Shown here piece by piece: positions 30,334-44,737 of a stretch of 64,000 nt of DNA; the stretch's first letter is position 1; each line of letters starts with the position of its first letter. The position numbers and the translations under genes were made by a program. The DNA lies in sequence record MZ622713.1, one strand, 5' to 3'. Below the pieces are notes generated by a model. It was not told the origin of the DNA and did not search any database. It worked only from the letters and a program-made list of their open reading frames with translations.

Positions 30334-30858
30334 ATGCTTATTATCAACACCGATGGCTCCTGCATAGGTGAATCGGGACCCGGACCATCTGGTTACGGGA
30401 TTGTCATCCGTGAAGGTGACGTAGTAATAGAACTAAGTGCGGGATATCGTCGTTCTACCAACAACCGTATGGAAATGTTGGCGACTATCGTAGCGCTGGA
30501 GGGATTGCCTGAGCGTCGTAAGGTATCGGTTACCACAGACTCACAATACGTCAAGCAAGGTATCGAGCAATGGATACACGGCTGGCGCAGAAGAGACTGG
30601 AAACGTGCAGATGGCGGTCCTGTTAAGAACGTGGATTTATGGAAGCGTCTTTATGACATGACACGTTATCATGATGTGACTTGGAATTGGGTTAAAGGAC
30701 ACTCCGGTGACCCAGACAACGAACGTTGTGATTCATTAGCTCAAGATGCTGCCCGTAACCACGCAACCTTAGAAGACGAAGGCTTTTTCACTTATAACGA
30801 AAACCTTCCTAAGTTCACACCAGACCCTAACCGTCAGTGGTGGAGAAGAAAAAGATGA
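30334..30858 (+). CDS. rnhA: Ribonuclease HI
   Basis: [55 protein letters not shown]; all four acidic catalytic residues present. Confidence 0.95.
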
Positions 30859-31175
30859 TAGACATGTCCGAATCCAAAGAGATTCTTAAAAAGATCAAAG
30901 ACTTCAACAAAAAGTCTTTTAAAGACATGAGTCCGGAAGAGGTTAGCGAGTTCAACACCGAGATACTGAGTAACCCTTTGGTTAACAGCATCGTTCGTAT
31001 TAACCTTATGACCGTACCAAACTACTCACCTTATTGTGGGTCTGTTGAGTGTAGGGTGGTTCCACGAACTAATTACAAAGGTGGTCAATTCCATTGTCCT
31101 TGTTGTAGCTGGGTTTCTAAGTTCCCGGATGACTTCATGGCATTGTACCACGGCCATTGGAGTCCAGATCAATAG
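30855..31175 (+). CDS. Small Cys-rich, probably zinc-binding protein
   Basis: ATGA overlap with rnhA; YCGSVEC...FHCPCCSW. Confidence 0.65.
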
Positions 31176-31234
31176 GGGGGGGTCATCCTCCCTTTTCTGC
31201 CGCTTATCAAATATTTGAGTTGAGAGATTAACAA

Positions 31235-31717
31235 ATGAAAATCAATTTAGACCATGTTAATAACGAGCCTAGTAAAGGTTACGTGAGTGTAAGTTTAGCA
31301 TACCATCAATGTGATCTCATCCGTGAGATTTTGGAACAGCAAGCTATCACTCCAATTGATGAAGGTAAATTCCATTGCACTATTGCTTATGACCGTGATC
31401 TAAGCAGTACTTTGGAAATCGACATAGACCCGGGTCGTGTTTATACCGGTGAAGTCATCGGGGTGGAATTACTTGGTGATGTGAAAGATGGATTACAAAG
31501 CGCTGTAGCCCTTACCTTTAAATCTCCGGAACTAACAGAAGAACACTTCCGTTGGATGGCGGTTGGGTTTGATCACAGTTGGCCGGAATACATCCCTCAC
31601 ATGTCCGTAGCTTATGATGTTCCAGTAGAGGAAGCTGAGCGCTTAGTGGACATCCTTCAAATTTTCGTAGGTCAAACATTCTACTTTGATGACCTATCAG
31701 CAGAACCAGTAAAATAA
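31235..31717 (+). CDS. acb1: 2H phosphodiesterase, Acb1 (T4 gp57B)-like anti-CBASS nuclease
   Basis: Two HxT/S motifs (KFHCTIAY, YIPHMSVAY), S.EL..EH....AVGFDHSWPEY and terminal EPVK parallel the recalled T4 57B/Acb1 layout; 160 aa. Confidence 0.7.
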   Translation: MKINLDHVNNEPSKGYVSVSLAYHQCDLIREILEQQAITPIDEGKFHCTIAYDRDLSSTLEIDIDPGRVYTGEVIGVELLGDVKDGLQSAVALTFKSPELTEEHFRWMAVGFDHSWPEYIPHMSVAYDVPVEEAERLVDILQIFVGQTFYFDDLSAEPVK

Positions 31718-31737: not shown

Positions 31738-32391
31738 ATGGGAAAGAAAAACAAAGGTACACGTCGGGGTGTACAGATCGCTGCACGTCAAAACAGAATG
31801 GCGCGTATCAATAAATATACCATAGCCAAAGTGGTGAAACAAATCTCCGACCATCTGTATTTCTACGGGAGTCATTCACATCAACTGGATACCATAGACT
31901 GGAATCCAATCCTTACAAAGTTGGTGCGACATGAAGATCAACAAACAGCACTAAAGAGTATGGTGGGGTTATTATCCGAGAAGTCCCCGTGGCAATTGCT
32001 CTTGTTTGTTGGTGTTGAAACCGATGACGCCTTAGAACTGTTTTCTTTCTTAGAGACATTCAAAGATCACACTTACGTTAACGTTAGTGAGCCAACCATG
32101 GATTACATTGAAGCGCGCTTAGCGGATATTAAACAAAACATATCTGAAGAAGCACTATTCAAAGATACTCAGTTAACACTTAACTCTGAGATCAAGGGAT
32201 TTGGTTACTATTTGTTTAACTCTAGTGATTATAATTTAGAAGGGTCAGAGGATGAGATCGCTGACCTATTTTACGAGTCTGGGGTGTTTGACTTACCTTA
32301 CGACCCTAGCAACTATCAACGTGTGGAACGCAAACATTTCTCCGATATGTTTAAACGCCAAGAACTCCGACTTATTAAGGATAAAAAATGA
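31738..32391 (+). CDS. Hypothetical protein, basic N-terminus
   Basis: 217-aa ORF, AGGA Shine-Dalgarno; ATGA overlap with the next gene. Confidence 0.7.
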   Translation: MGKKNKGTRRGVQIAARQNRMARINKYTIAKVVKQISDHLYFYGSHSHQLDTIDWNPILTKLVRHEDQQTALKSMVGLLSEKSPWQLLLFVGVETDDALELFSFLETFKDHTYVNVSEPTMDYIEARLADIKQNISEEALFKDTQLTLNSEIKGFGYYLFNSSDYNLEGSEDEIADLFYESGVFDLPYDPSNYQRVERKHFSDMFKRQELRLIKDKK

Positions 32392-33548
32392 AACACTTTA
32401 TCGACGCTCTACAAGACATCAAAAATGAATCTCAGCTAGCTGTACAACAACGCACTAAAGTTAACTGGTCCCATCAATTCAACATCACCAAAGAGGGCTA
32501 CCTCCCACAATGGTCTGGTATCATCAATGTACCGGGATTAGAAGTCGCTGTAAAAGAGCTGGAGTGGGTTCTAAGTAAAGAGCGTAAACTAGACATCTTA
32601 CATGAAGCGGGTATGAACCACCGTGATTACCTAGCCGCGGCAGAAGACTTAATCCACACTCGTGAGTACACTTACGACGAACGTGTTGATCTTGCCATTA
32701 AGAAGTTCTCTGAGTCTGACGTAGTTTTACGCAATGCCGACGATCTACAACTAGCGCTGGTTGACAACGGTTTAATGCAACGTTACCTGACCGTAGAGAA
32801 ATGCTTAGACGCAATGGGCTTCACCGCTATCCGTGAAGAAGTGGTTTGTAAAGAAGGCGAGACAGCAATCAGCTGGGGTGAAGCGTTTGGTAACCCGACT
32901 AGCACCGGTGCTATTTTGTTCCACAACCCTAAGATGCTTCCTAAGGACCAAGGTATCTCGTACACACTTTGCTTGTCTGAAAACCGTTACACTTATCTGC
33001 CTAAACAAATCATGTTGAGCTTCATGCGCACAGACATCCCGTTGGAAGTTCGTATGGAAGGCATGGACGCACTAAAAGCTAACCCTTACGTTGATCTTAT
33101 CGAAGGCATCCTACAAAGCAAACCTTTTGCTGAGTTGAAGCGTCTTGGTTTAGAACTAACGGAAGAAGTTTACATGCAAGTTGGTGACCAGCACGTACTG
33201 CATCAACTGTTGGATGATTTGTTGATTCCACGTCACGAACTGCATTCCCGTCTACAACTAAGTGAACTAGACCCACTGAAAGAGTTCGGTATCGAAGTTC
33301 TACCTTACGCTTTGTACGCGGAACACGTGGCTCACCGCATGAACATGGTTCATTCTACGTTTACTCTAGATGTGAACTATTTGGTGATGGAACAAGAAAC
33401 GCTAGCTATGTTGGATAAAATCCAAGATGCAGGTGAGAAATACAAAGAACCTGCTCTAGTCCGAATCGATCGTCCGCAAGACCTAACACTAGTGGATGTT
33501 CCTTTGACTACAGAAGAAGTAAAAACTACTAGCTACTTCGGCGCGTAA
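32388..33548 (+). CDS. Thymidylate-synthase-fold protein lacking catalytic motifs
   Basis: MKHFIDALQDIKNE, QFNITKEGYLP, AVKELEWVLSKERKLDILHEAGM and IPRHELHSRLQLSELD...LPYALYAEHVAH align by eye with ThyA; PCH, QRS, N177 and HxY are absent. Confidence 0.65.
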   Translation: MKHFIDALQDIKNESQLAVQQRTKVNWSHQFNITKEGYLPQWSGIINVPGLEVAVKELEWVLSKERKLDILHEAGMNHRDYLAAAEDLIHTREYTYDERVDLAIKKFSESDVVLRNADDLQLALVDNGLMQRYLTVEKCLDAMGFTAIREEVVCKEGETAISWGEAFGNPTSTGAILFHNPKMLPKDQGISYTLCLSENRYTYLPKQIMLSFMRTDIPLEVRMEGMDALKANPYVDLIEGILQSKPFAELKRLGLELTEEVYMQVGDQHVLHQLLDDLLIPRHELHSRLQLSELDPLKEFGIEVLPYALYAEHVAHRMNMVHSTFTLDVNYLVMEQETLAMLDKIQDAGEKYKEPALVRIDRPQDLTLVDVPLTTEEVKTTSYFGA

Positions 33549-40207: not shown

Positions 40208-43200
40208 ATGAAACACATTCGACAAATCCTGTTAGACAAAACGGCACTGATTCGTATCAGTTACGCTGAGTCTAAAGGTGACCCGGCGGAAATAGCATTA
40301 GCTAAAGCCCGCTTTGAAGGTCTAACGGACGATGAAGTCCAGTTCCTAAGTATCAACGAACGTTACACAGGTGCTGGAACTTATATCGGCGAAATCAAAA
40401 TCACGGGACGTGATGGGTTTGAGTTTAAGCAGGAGTGGTCACCGGGTGATACGGTACCTATGCTTAGCACTAAAGAGCGCATCAAAGTCCCTACTTTGGA
40501 AGTATTCCGCAATATCGTTATTCCGGGACTATATTACGTCGAAGACATCGCAGAACTATGTCTGGTCGTGAAAGACTCAATGACTATCCCTGACATTCAA
40601 CGTTTACTAGGTTTTGAATTTGACCCGGGTGAACTTGAAGTTCGCTTAAGTCATCTAAGGGTTCAGTCTCCTTTTGTAGATGGAACACTTCCTCTTAAAA
40701 CAGTAACTCCTAATCCTGACGGCACTATGACTGACGGTACAGGTATTACGGTAACAGACTCATCTATTGCTGGTAACATTTTGCCTGCTAACCCTTACGC
40801 TCCTACACAGTACATTACGGTGGAACGTGTGGGTTCAGAGCCAGTGTTCTCCGCAGAAATCGATAAAGCGTTTAAAGCTGAATTCGTAGGTAGCTACCGC
40901 CAAGGTGAAATCATCGAAGGCAGCCTAGCAGAAGACAACACATTCAGTGTTGATCTAGATGTTAAGAACCAATTGACTGACGACCTTCAATTATTAGTGT
41001 CGGTAGGTCTAGACCGCGATAAACTCACAGACGTTTACTCGGTGTCGTACATCGATGAACATTGGGCTATCGGCGAGTACACCACGGAAGTGGATTTAAC
41101 TCGTGTTGGTCAACCTTTCCGTATTGCTGGTTCAGTAAGTGGTGATTTCGGTCAAACGCCTTGGGGTAATGAATTACTTAATCCTAAGATCATTGTTGAA
41201 GAAATCGGTCAAGAACCTGTTGAGATACCTTTCAACGTGGATGGTACGTTTGACGTACGACACACACCAGTTGTTGCAGGTGAGATGACGGTTAAGTTTG
41301 TTTGTGGTCTACCACAAGACTTGAACGTGTTCTCTGAAACTCACCAGATCTTAGCCGCCCTTGCTGTGGATGATTTAATCCTAGGTCCTTTGTCAGCAGA
41401 CAAAACCGAAGTGGGTGCAGACGAACTGGTTACACTCACTAGTTCTTTGAAGTCAGCAGACGGACTAACGCTGACTGACGCTCCTGTGGACTTCTTGGTT
41501 GACGATCAAGTATTAACTCAGTTGTTTGCCAACCCAGAAGGTGTTTTACAACATATCTACGATGTAGAGAACGACACCACAGACCCAGTGACTTACGCAG
41601 TTAAACTTCGCTTAGGCGCGGAAGAGACCAACGTAATCACTATCACGGTTCAACCTTCTGATCAAATCCCGGGTCGCTTCGAGATTCTGGTTAATGAGGG
41701 TGAGTTGTTCAAGCCGGGTGAACTACGCTTTAAGATCTATGATACTGTAGATCGTCTGATGGTGGGAACCTCAGGTACTTGGTTCCGTGAGAACGGTGCA
41801 CCTAAAGCTTACGTGGTAGATGGTGAAGAATACGTTGCTCAACTAGATTCTCCTATCGATGTGGAAAACACCGTAGTGGAATCGATCACATTGAAATGTC
41901 AATCACTAGAAACTCCAGTAGACTTTACTTGGAATCTAGTGCGTCGTTTTGATGAAGTGTTCTTGGAACCTACTAACCCTACCGAAGGTGTGACGGATGC
42001 ATCCATCACTCTAAGTGGTAAAACGTTAGACCAGACCGATCAACCTATCGCTAACATTCCGTTGGTATTTAAAGATGATGGTTTGAAGGTATCTGATATC
42101 AGCTCTAACGACCAAGGTGTGTTTAGTGTTAGCGTGACTGCTACTGACGAAGCAGAACACCTATATTCTTTCGTAGGGGAGAATGACATCGGTGCTTCTA
42201 TCGCAGTACAGTGGACTAAGAACCACATCATGAGTTCATTGGAACTGACCAGTTCTACGTCGGTTACGTTGTTCACAGATGAGACTTTTGAAATCATCGG
42301 TAAACTGCTTGACCAGTACAATGAAAACATGGCTGGTGAAACAGTTACGTTGGAATACCCTGACGCTCATACCGTGGACCAACAAACCACAGCAGACGGC
42401 TTCAATTTCGTAGCAGCTTACCGTGACAACGGTTCTTTGAACCACACGTTAACTGTTAAGTCTGGTGAGCTATCCGCTGACGTTAATGTGACTTGGGAAA
42501 CGAAGAGTGACCCTATCATCGCTAACCTAACGGTAGTGCCTAACACTGTAGACATCGGTGAGCAATACACAGTAACTGGTGAGATTCAAGTTAACTACCC
42601 GTACGACTGGTCAACGACTCGCGTAGCTGTAACGAATGATGCAGGCGACGTAGTTAATGTGACGTGTGCGGCAGACGGTAGCTTCTCTTACACAGGTACT
42701 GCGGTTGCTCAAGGTAACTTTACACTACGTGCTGATGCAGTGGATGTGGTTACTCCAGAAGAAACGATCGTGCTTACGGTACGTGAACCTCGTGTAGCGA
42801 CTACTATCAACGTAGCTAACCTACCTGATAGCGCTAGCGTTTGGGACGGCCAAACCGCAGTGATCACTGGTACTATTCTGGACCAACATGGTGCTGTGAT
42901 TGATGTGCCGGTTACGGCTGATCTAGAGGGTACTCCGTTGACCAACACTTCTGAGGTAGCAGGTGAATTCGAGTTCTCTGCAACTTACGTTGGTGTAGGT
43001 ACCGCGGTTATGACCATCAATGCTGGCGAAGTGTCTCGTGAAATCACCATTACTTGGAAAGAAATCACTTACGACATCACTAGCATCAAGTACAGTCCTG
43101 AAGGTGTAGTACAAGGTCAGCCATTTACTTTCCAAGGTAAACTAGTATCTGCGGGCGGTGGTGATGTCGCGAACAAAGACATCGACCTAGTGTTGACTTC

Positions 43201-44737
43201 TGACTACACTGTACTGACTACGGTTACTACAGATGTGGACGGTAACTTCAGCGGTCAATACGCAACGAACACTCCGGGTGCTCTATCTACCTCGATCAAG
43301 TTCGGTACATTGGTTAAAGGTCCTTACACGACTATCATCAGTGAGATCATGGTTCCGACTACGGTTTCTATTAACACAGATCCTAAGACCGAGAACATCG
43401 GTACTAACGTTAACTTCTCAGGTCTAGTTAAAGACCAGAAAGGTAACATCATGGTTGGTGTGTTGGCAGAACTTAAAGACGGTGACACTGTTGTTAAGTC
43501 TCAGGAAACGTTGTTTAATGGTCGCTTTAGCATCGATCATACTGAAGCAACAGCTGGCGTTAAAGTCTACACTATCAAAGTGGGTGACGTTACTCATGAC
43601 ATCCAAGTTACTTGGATGGATCCTAATGCAGTGGCAACGATTAACCAAATCGCACCAATCGACAATGACGCATCAACCGGTGAAACCATCACGGTAACTG
43701 TTGAGCTACTAAACAGCTCTGGCGGTGCAGTGAGTGGTGTAACTCCAACGTTCACTTACACTGGTACAGCAACTCCTGAACAAAACGGTAACGTGTTCAC
43801 AATCACTGAAGCGGGTGAAACTAACGCAACATTGACAGTATCTGCTAATGGCGTTGATTTACCAGTTGCATTGACTTGGACTGCTCCGGCTCCGGTTTAC
43901 ACAGAACTAAGAATCGTCTCTGGCGATACTGAGGGTGTAATTGGTGAAGATGTTCCTGTCGTTGTAACAACGCTTGACCAGTTCGGCAACCCAATGGGTA
44001 ACCAAACTGTTGTTTGGGATGACGGTGGTATTCCATACCCTGTAAGAACTTCAGGTCCAGATGGTACGTTGACGTTTAATATGTCACACGACCAAGCTGA
44101 AGCTGTAACTTACAACTTCGCTGGCGACAGCGGTCAGGTTAAAGCTACCCACACCATTACTTGGTCAGCACCAGCACCAGTTTACTCTTCTATCGAAGTA
44201 GTATCAGGTGTAACTGAAGCGTCTGTTGGTACCGATGTACAAGTTAAGGTAGTAACTAAAGACCAATATGGTAACCCAATGCCTAACCAGTTGATCATCT
44301 GGGATACAGGCGGCATTCCGTTCCCTCAAACATCAAGTGATGAGAATGGTGAGAAGACCTTTACGTTCAATGAAGCTAGCCCGACTACAATCACTTACCG
44401 ATTCGCCGGTGGCAGCGCAAGCGTAACGAAAGCTACTCACACTATCACTTGGTCTGAACCTACTCCTGTTTACACAAGCATCGATGTTCAACACGGTAAT
44501 CTAGATGTCGCAGTAGGTGAAACGGTAACCTTCACCATCACTACCCTTGACCAAAATGGACAACCAATGGATCAAGAGCAAGTTGTGATGTATGATGGTA
44601 GTATGACTTGGCCGGCTCGCACTTCTAATCTAGAAGGCGTGGTGGTGTATGAGTTTACGTCAGCCGAAGCTAAGAGCGTAACTTACACATTCATTGGCGG
44701 AGACGATCGTAAAGAGTACACCGTAACTTGGAGCTAA
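40208..44737 (+). CDS. Large acidic protein with tandem bacterial Ig-like (Big) domains; probable virion surface fibre
   Basis: 1509 aa; ~95-aa Thr/Val-rich repeats with (L/K)DQ.G.P(M/I)....V and S/TD..G.F motifs, ending in TW. Confidence 0.8.
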   Translation: MKHIRQILLDKTALIRISYAESKGDPAEIALAKARFEGLTDDEVQFLSINERYTGAGTYIGEIKITGRDGFEFKQEWSPGDTVPMLSTKERIKVPTLEVFRNIVIPGLYYVEDIAELCLVVKDSMTIPDIQRLLGFEFDPGELEVRLSHLRVQSPFVDGTLPLKTVTPNPDGTMTDGTGITVTDSSIAGNILPANPYAPTQYITVERVGSEPVFSAEIDKAFKAEFVGSYRQGEIIEGSLAEDNTFSVDLDVKNQLTDDLQLLVSVGLDRDKLTDVYSVSYIDEHWAIGEYTTEVDLTRVGQPFRIAGSVSGDFGQTPWGNELLNPKIIVEEIGQEPVEIPFNVDGTFDVRHTPVVAGEMTVKFVCGLPQDLNVFSETHQILAALAVDDLILGPLSADKTEVGADELVTLTSSLKSADGLTLTDAPVDFLVDDQVLTQLFANPEGVLQHIYDVENDTTDPVTYAVKLRLGAEETNVITITVQPSDQIPGRFEILVNEGELFKPGELRFKIYDTVDRLMVGTSGTWFRENGAPKAYVVDGEEYVAQLDSPIDVENTVVESITLKCQSLETPVDFTWNLVRRFDEVFLEPTNPTEGVTDASITLSGKTLDQTDQPIANIPLVFKDDGLKVSDISSNDQGVFSVSVTATDEAEHLYSFVGENDIGASIAVQWTKNHIMSSLELTSSTSVTLFTDETFEIIGKLLDQYNENMAGETVTLEYPDAHTVDQQTTADGFNFVAAYRDNGSLNHTLTVKSGELSADVNVTWETKSDPIIANLTVVPNTVDIGEQYTVTGEIQVNYPYDWSTTRVAVTNDAGDVVNVTCAADGSFSYTGTAVAQGNFTLRADAVDVVTPEETIVLTVREPRVATTINVANLPDSASVWDGQTAVITGTILDQHGAVIDVPVTADLEGTPLTNTSEVAGEFEFSATYVGVGTAVMTINAGEVSREITITWKEITYDITSIKYSPEGVVQGQPFTFQGKLVSAGGGDVANKDIDLVLTSDYTVLTTVTTDVDGNFSGQYATNTPGALSTSIKFGTLVKGPYTTIISEIMVPTTVSINTDPKTENIGTNVNFSGLVKDQKGNIMVGVLAELKDGDTVVKSQETLFNGRFSIDHTEATAGVKVYTIKVGDVTHDIQVTWMDPNAVATINQIAPIDNDASTGETITVTVELLNSSGGAVSGVTPTFTYTGTATPEQNGNVFTITEAGETNATLTVSANGVDLPVALTWTAPAPVYTELRIVSGDTEGVIGEDVPVVVTTLDQFGNPMGNQTVVWDDGGIPYPVRTSGPDGTLTFNMSHDQAEAVTYNFAGDSGQVKATHTITWSAPAPVYSSIEVVSGVTEASVGTDVQVKVVTKDQYGNPMPNQLIIWDTGGIPFPQTSSDENGEKTFTFNEASPTTITYRFAGGSASVTKATHTITWSEPTPVYTSIDVQHGNLDVAVGETVTFTITTLDQNGQPMDQEQVVMYDGSMTWPARTSNLEGVVVYEFTSAEAKSVTYTFIGGDDRKEYTVTWS

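Follow-up and report, generated by a model that had tools for sequence, protein, structure and literature searches.

An Acb1-family 2H phosphodiesterase without a C-terminal lid in the nucleus-forming Vibrio phage phiKT1019

Acb1 of phage T4, the product of gene 57B, and nine of its homologues cleave 3'3'-cyclic GMP–AMP (3'3'-cGAMP) and cyclic AMP–AMP–AMP (cAAA), and cyclic tetra-adenylate (cA4) is left uncleaved by the T4 enzyme (Hobbs et al. 2022, PMC9117128). The Acb1 proteins of T4 and Erwinia phage FBB1 carry a catalytic tetrad of two HxT motifs (H44, T46, H113 and T115), aromatic residues that stack on the bases (Y12, W74, F107 and W147), a glutamate (E141) that contacts the adenine N6 and a flexible C-terminal lid comprising residues 145–152 (PMC9117128). 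Here we compare with these enzymes a 160-residue protein of Vibrio phage phiKT1019 ('Eric'), whose gene lies in a 64,000-nucleotide stretch (the window) of sequence record MZ622713.1 (238,840 bp); a window position is the record position minus 62000. A reading of the window made from its sequence alone (the sequence-only reading) had proposed that this gene encodes an Acb1-like phosphodiesterase directed against CBASS, the system of antiphage signalling by cyclic oligonucleotides, and that it comes from a phiKZ-related jumbo phage. The source was correctly recognized, since the window is identical to phiKT1019 (100% identity, megablast), which has been placed in the Chimalliviridae and whose shell protein ChmA, tagged with green fluorescent protein, encloses the phage DNA as seen by fluorescence microscopy (PMC10587174). 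That description of the phage mentions neither CBASS nor Acb1. A close relative, pTD1, is assigned to the Chimalliviridae, subfamily Gorgonvirinae, genus Tidunavirus.

Viral two-histidine (2H) phosphodiesterases (PDEs) fall into structural groups in which variation of the core sets the substrate range (Doherty et al. 2025 preprint, 10.1101/2025.08.21.671373). The range is broadest in group 3, which contains T4 Acb1, PDE-8 and PDE-9 and acts on the messengers of cGAS/DncV-like nucleotidyltransferases (CD-NTases) and also on type III CRISPR and homeostatic nucleotides; members within one structural group have broad activity on CBASS signals in common (10.1101/2025.08.21.671373). PDE-9 comes from Burkholderia phage BCSR5 and is the protein of structures 9Q2G and 9Q2Y. 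It is active against 3'3'-cGAMP, whereas 2'3'-c-di-AMP is largely spared and Panoptes is consequently not triggered. Its lid is formed by the N-terminal 15 residues, and PDE-9 from which this lid has been deleted is still active on 3'3'-cGAMP (10.1101/2025.08.21.671373).

The phiKT1019 gene, entered in GenBank as a hypothetical protein (UPT53919.1), has an ATG start and a double stop (TAATAA), and its product belongs to the Acb1 family. Against Pfam PF23474 (Anti-CBASS protein Acb1) it scores 59.5 bits over model positions 4–127 of 144 (E value, 4.1e-16; curated cutoff, 27), on a scale on which T4 Acb1 itself scores 202.7 bits, and it matches PHROG 755 with an E value of 8.6e-31. Because of these two matches, its pair of catalytic motifs is far beyond what chance would provide. 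The generic 2'-5' RNA ligase model PF13563 gave only a partial match of 23.9 bits, below its threshold of 27, and NCBIfam returned no model for the protein. Homologues carry the label 'RNA ligase' in PHROG 755 and RefSeq; as T4 gene 57B, which is Acb1, bears the same label, we rejected it as a meaningful annotation. Significant matches in a sequence search of the Protein Data Bank (PDB) were confined to 7T26 (FBB1 Acb1) and 9Q2G/9Q2Y (PDE-9).

An AlphaFold2 model built from 12 sequences (mean predicted local distance difference test score, pLDDT, 83.9; predicted template modelling score, pTM, 0.79; pLDDT below 50 only at residues 1–10) has the compact single-domain fold of a 2H phosphoesterase. 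A structural comparison with Acb1, the check that the sequence-only reading had suggested, places the known Acb1 and PDE-9 structures as the closest solved folds: Foldseek against the PDB ranked 9Q2Y, 9Q2G, 7T26 and 7T27 at the top with E values of 1.3e-8 to 1.5e-6, followed by an Arabidopsis cyclic nucleotide phosphodiesterase at 4.5e-4. The superfamily fold and the two-histidine mechanism are also common to LigT/ThpR, plant cyclic phosphodiesterase (CPDase), Usb1, AKAP18, the poxvirus cGAMP phosphodiesterase, coronavirus ns2 and rotavirus VP3. The Acb1-like identity proposed at the outset is therefore borne out by the Pfam match above threshold and by profile and structure comparisons that group the protein with the characterized Acb1-type viral 2H phosphodiesterases.

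Pairwise and multiple alignments with T4 57B (25% identity), using the residue roles assigned in PMC9117128, show that the catalytic tetrad is intact. The three sequence features that had first drawn attention to the gene are all present, namely EGKFHCTIAY (residues 43–52, with H47-C-T49), GFDHSWPEYIPHMSVAY (residues 111–127, with H122-M-S124) and the terminal EPVK (residues 157–160). H47 and T49, which correspond to T4 H44 and T46, are invariant in all alignments, as is H122, the counterpart of T4 H113. S124, a conservative replacement of the T4 threonine (T115), does not vary among the members of the lid-less branch described below. Hence H47, T49, H122 and S124 make up the HxT/HxT tetrad of Acb1. 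Two of the stacking aromatics are also retained, T4 Y12 as Y16 and T4 F107, with a change of aromatic side chain, as W116. Judged from alignment alone, E157-P158 corresponds to T4 E141-P142 and may preserve the contact to the adenine N6.

The family has divided into forms with and without the T4-type lid, and the phiKT1019 protein is one of the latter. Homologues were found by tblastn in 207 phage records. Those of the T4-type Straboviridae (T4, KVP40 57B and Acinetobacter phage Berthold) and two metagenomic proteins retain the aromatic residue of the hairpin as well as the C-terminal tryptophan, whereas both are absent from the proteins of the Gorgonvirinae, Klebsiella phage Miami, Stenotrophomonas phage BUCTxx100, Erwinia phage RisingSun, Pseudomonas phage MIZ-Pa99 and Cronobacter phage GAP32, all of which have a longer helix following the second motif. 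In a maximum-likelihood tree of 14 proteins, a small sample drawn with a root for display only, a single branch with support of 99/98 parts the lid-less from the T4-type proteins. A profile of the lid-less branch matched PDE-9 better (3.6e-11) than FBB1 Acb1 (1e-8), and PDE-9 has the closest core structure and a chain that likewise ends without a C-terminal lid. The original assignment thus holds for the family and fails for the type: the phiKT1019 protein is an Acb1-family member, but it is no T4-type Acb1, as it lacks the tryptophan lid and W74 and lies on a separate jumbo-phage branch nearer to PDE-9. The likeness to PDE-9 is itself distant (identity ∼16–22%); PDE-9 has a hairpin tryptophan equivalent to W74 where the phiKT1019 protein has Leu-Gly, and the activity of PDE-9 is known from assays whereas the phiKT1019 protein is known from its sequence and a model. 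The T4-type genes differ in context as well, lying beside 57A and gene 1, while the phiKT1019 gene lies downstream of the ribonuclease HI (RNase HI) gene.

With the family model, phiKT1019, pTD1, RisingSun and Miami were each found to have a single copy of the gene, and phiKZ was found to have none. Since it is present in some chimalliviruses and absent from phiKZ, we regard it as an accessory, non-core gene in the Chimalliviridae. Among its orthologues, ratios of nonsynonymous to synonymous substitution rates (dN/dS) of 0.025 and 0.039 in two pairs with unsaturated synonymous sites demonstrate purifying selection. A search for the locus in IMG/VR, by protein and then by alignment, returned only close Gorgonvirinae orthologues, and a word-based protein search returned 11 relatives, every one of them tagged as Acb1 by Pfam.

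Two of the lid-less homologues have neighbours that deserve mention. In MIZ-Pa99, a 210-kb Pseudomonas phage (PV472050.1, stretch 1–814), the gene lies directly 3' of one annotated as a DHH phosphoesterase, and the two may form a pair of nucleotide-degrading enzymes. The Straboviridae taxonomy line of this record looks doubtful in view of the phage size and of the grouping of its homologue with that of the chimallivirus RisingSun. In GAP32 (stretch 395–1175) the homologue is two genes upstream of a gene for a Sir2-like (NAD-dependent deacetylase) protein, and this neighbourhood may be related to anti-defence or to NAD.

We propose, by analogy with the characterized members of the family, that the phiKT1019 protein is a metal-independent Acb1-family 2H phosphodiesterase that hydrolyses 3'-5' cyclic di- and trinucleotide signals and thereby keeps CBASS effectors off, and we give this proposal a probability of about 0.6. 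The enzyme would be made outside the phage nucleus, in the cytoplasm of the host, and would use its U-shaped 2H pocket to bind immune signals that are 3'-5'-linked cyclic di- and trinucleotides. Acid–base catalysis by H47/T49 and H122/S124 would linearize them by way of an intermediate with a 2',3'-cyclic phosphate. This would leave CBASS effectors, possibly together with the NucC nuclease of type III CRISPR activated by cyclic tri-adenylate (cA3), switched off. The N-terminal 13 residues could take the place of the missing C-terminal lid, as in PDE-9.

Defences that rely on signalling or on RNA guides are not blocked by the phage nucleus (review, PMC13282480). The extension to type III CRISPR signals that the sequence-only reading had entertained is plausible for cA3 only; cA4 degradation is unlikely because T4 Acb1 fails to cleave cA4, and for the same reason (PMC9117128) we rejected it as a default expectation. 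The signal cA3 is used by the type III-B/NucC system of Vibrio metoecus (PMC8682760) and also by the Serratia type III (NucC) system that restricts the nucleus-forming phage PCH45 (PMC13282480). Searches of phiKT1019 with family models found no Tad2-family gene and no match to Acb2, although the Acb2 model matched nowhere, controls included, and its blank means little.

Several observations weigh against the proposed function. The C-terminal lid (T4 residues 145–152), and with it W147, is absent, as the chain stops at the equivalent of T4 K144, and in T4 Acb1 removal of residues 145–152 abolished Panoptes activation (10.1101/2025.08.21.671373). W74 is also lost; the alignment method decides whether L80, G81 or V83 takes its position, and the whole hairpin segment (residues 77–84, VELLGDVK) is free of aromatics. 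The position of T4 E141 is not constant, being Glu in phiKT1019, Aphrodite1, USC-1 and PDCC-1, Ala in pTD1 and VP4B and different again in RisingSun and Miami, and on account of this variability the specificity may differ from that of T4 Acb1; the Glu/Ala variation at residue 157 within the Gorgonvirinae might alter the base preference. Other structural groups of viral 2H phosphodiesterases have narrow specificity or cleave none of 18 messengers (10.1101/2025.08.21.671373), and the activity that we ascribe to the lid-less branch is extrapolated from its relatives. Finally, Pfam and PHROG scans of the four genes next to the phiKT1019 gene identified RNase HI, an AraC-like helix-turn-helix protein and unknowns, with no counter-defence island among them, and a search of indexed sequencing runs for this phage turned up DNA metagenomes and not a single RNA run.

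The absence of the C-terminal lid is a property of the branch. The same endpoint is found in all Gorgonvirinae orthologues and in the homologues of Miami, RisingSun, MIZ-Pa99 and GAP32, and in the VIA alignment residue 160 of the model pairs with residue 165 of PDE-9, where that chain ends, and with the final ordered residue of apo FBB1 Acb1. Truncation as an artefact was considered and rejected because the orthologues share the endpoint, the gene has two consecutive stop codons and 20 nt separate it from the gene that follows. At the other end of the protein, the aligned core (VIA) starts at model residues 9–12, equivalent to PDE-9 residues 12–15. From the start and end points of the structural alignment, the N-terminal 13 residues, which are modelled with low confidence, therefore sit at the position of the PDE-9 lid (residues 1–15). 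This segment begins with MKxNxD in phiKT1019, pTD1, VP4B, Aphrodite1 and USC-1, shows no sequence likeness to the PDE-9 lid and is nearly absent from the homologues of RisingSun, MIZ-Pa99 and GAP32. An N-terminal lid in the phiKT1019 protein is a reasonable guess from the model, no finding. Since the C-terminal lid has been lost naturally here, its contribution can be put to the test.

The altered pocket also invites the explanation that the protein is a 2H phosphodiesterase for some other messenger, such as a narrower subset of signals, a cyclic oligoadenylate that is larger or has 2'-5' links, or a novel signal. The substrate range of viral 2H phosphodiesterases tracks the core, to the point that some groups are inactive on the whole messenger panel, and the lid-less forms, on their own well-supported branch, have lost both W74 and W147 and vary at the position of E157. 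Against such a change of substrate, the nearest solved relatives, PDE-9 and FBB1 Acb1, both degrade 3'3'-cGAMP, activity on CBASS signals is broad within one structural group (Doherty et al.), and Y16, W116 and E157 are all retained in the phiKT1019 protein, and we consider this explanation rather unlikely. A related idea, slightly more doubtful still, is that the lid-less jumbo-phage branch, which includes several nucleus-forming genera, constitutes a functionally distinct subfamily in which a pocket remodelled by the absence of the hairpin tryptophan, the absence of the C-terminal lid and perhaps the presence of an N-terminal lid confers a substrate profile unlike that of T4 Acb1. Such a subfamily might, like PDE-9, destroy CBASS signals and the cA3 of type III CRISPR and spare the Panoptes decoy 2'3'-c-di-AMP, or it might accept larger rings that T4 Acb1 excludes.

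A housekeeping role at RNA ends, as a LigT/ThpR-type 2',3'-cyclic phosphodiesterase or 2'-5' ligase in the repair or processing of phage RNA, would fit the 'RNA ligase' labels of the homologues, the partial PF13563 match and the position of the gene next to that for RNase HI. We judge it improbable, given that the protein does not qualify as a member of the LigT/ThpR superfamily, scoring below the threshold and having other folds that rank better. Very improbable is a non-catalytic remnant, or a protein that only binds its ligand like a sponge. It would be in keeping with the loss of a lid that T4 Acb1 requires, but it is at odds with the invariance of both histidines and of the Thr/Ser residues of the tetrad in all aligned homologues and with the strong purifying selection, and PDE-9 acts on its preferred substrate even when its lid is removed. 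The most probable function of the phiKT1019 protein thus remains the hydrolysis of CBASS-type signals.

The gene and its elements are listed in Table 1. Its place is the same in phiKT1019 and pTD1, and the order in the Gorgonvirinae is RNase HI, the acb1-like gene, two genes of unknown function and GroEL. Just upstream is an open reading frame (ORF) of 112 amino acids (30837–31175, + strand) that overlaps the 3' end of the RNase HI gene; the C-terminal half of its product is rich in cysteine (C..C..CPCC) and resembles a zinc ribbon, and it has no match in Pfam or PHROG. The two downstream genes (31738–33548, + strand; 217 and 386 amino acids) match only Gorgonvirinae-specific PHROGs of unknown function, and their overlap by 4 nt suggests co-translation. 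Farther away, an ORF of 1509 amino acids (40208–44737, + strand; 102208–106737 in the record) is labelled in GenBank 'diguanylate cyclase/phosphodiesterase (GGDEF & EAL domains) with PAS/PAC sensor(s)'. Pfam detects no GGDEF, EAL or PAS domain in it and only immunoglobulin-like domains (Big_1, 55 bits, in three stretches near the C terminus); the label looks wrong, and a structural or surface protein is more likely.

Table 1. Elements of the acb1-like gene of phiKT1019 and its immediate upstream region (window positions)
Feature	Position	Strand	Basis
Terminator-like G-rich hairpin and T-run between the upstream 112-residue ORF and the acb1-like gene	31175..31201	+	Pattern scan only, no evidence on function
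acb1-like gene, 160-residue single-domain 2H phosphoesterase	31235..31717	+	ORF listing, translation, Pfam, AlphaFold2 model, fold search
Candidate N-terminal lid, 13 residues before the first strand	31235..31273	+	By position only
First catalytic motif, H47-C-T49 (T4 H44-x-T46)	31373..31381	+	Sequence and alignment
Second catalytic motif, H122-M-S124 (T4 H113-x-T115)	31598..31606	+	Sequence and alignment
C-terminal E157-P158-V-K plus stop	31703..31717	+	Alignments; E157-P158 aligned to T4 E141-P142

The occurrence of acb1 in jumbo phages is known from surveys of the AntiDefenseFinder type (PMC13573597), and UniRef names the orthologues of PDCC-1 and Aphrodite1 'Anti-CBASS protein Acb1'. The proteins of the Vibrio phages, RisingSun and Miami are not named in the supplements of Hobbs 2022 and Doherty 2025, and in the searchable literature we found neither phiKT1019 nor nucleus-forming phages mentioned in connection with Acb1, nor the lid-less branch of jumbo phages described as such. 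A 2026 review lists Tad1 as the sole anti-defence protein described in jumbo phages (PMC13282480). Tad1 of phiKZ resembles the protein proposed here in being a nucleus-forming phage's counter to signalling-based immunity, but it is an unrelated protein, a sponge that sequesters cyclic nucleotide signals without hydrolysing them. As the family has been described before, together with its mechanism and its distribution among phages, the gain is incremental: the phiKT1019 protein is an expected member of the Acb1 family in a slightly unusual form and represents no new kind of system.

Phages that form a nucleus are advocated for use in therapy and aquaculture because their shell shields the DNA from restriction enzymes and DNA-targeting CRISPR systems, and phiKT1019 itself is part of a shrimp cocktail. 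These phages remain open to immunity based on signals in the cytoplasm, for example CBASS or a type III CRISPR system acting with NucC. A conserved Acb1-family enzyme, found in Vibrio chimalliviruses, RisingSun and Miami and not in phiKZ, is a candidate answer to this weakness in some of them. If the lid-less proteins do prove to be a distinct subfamily, nucleus-forming phages would for the first time have been shown to possess an enzyme that counters the signalling immunity which the nucleus does not block.
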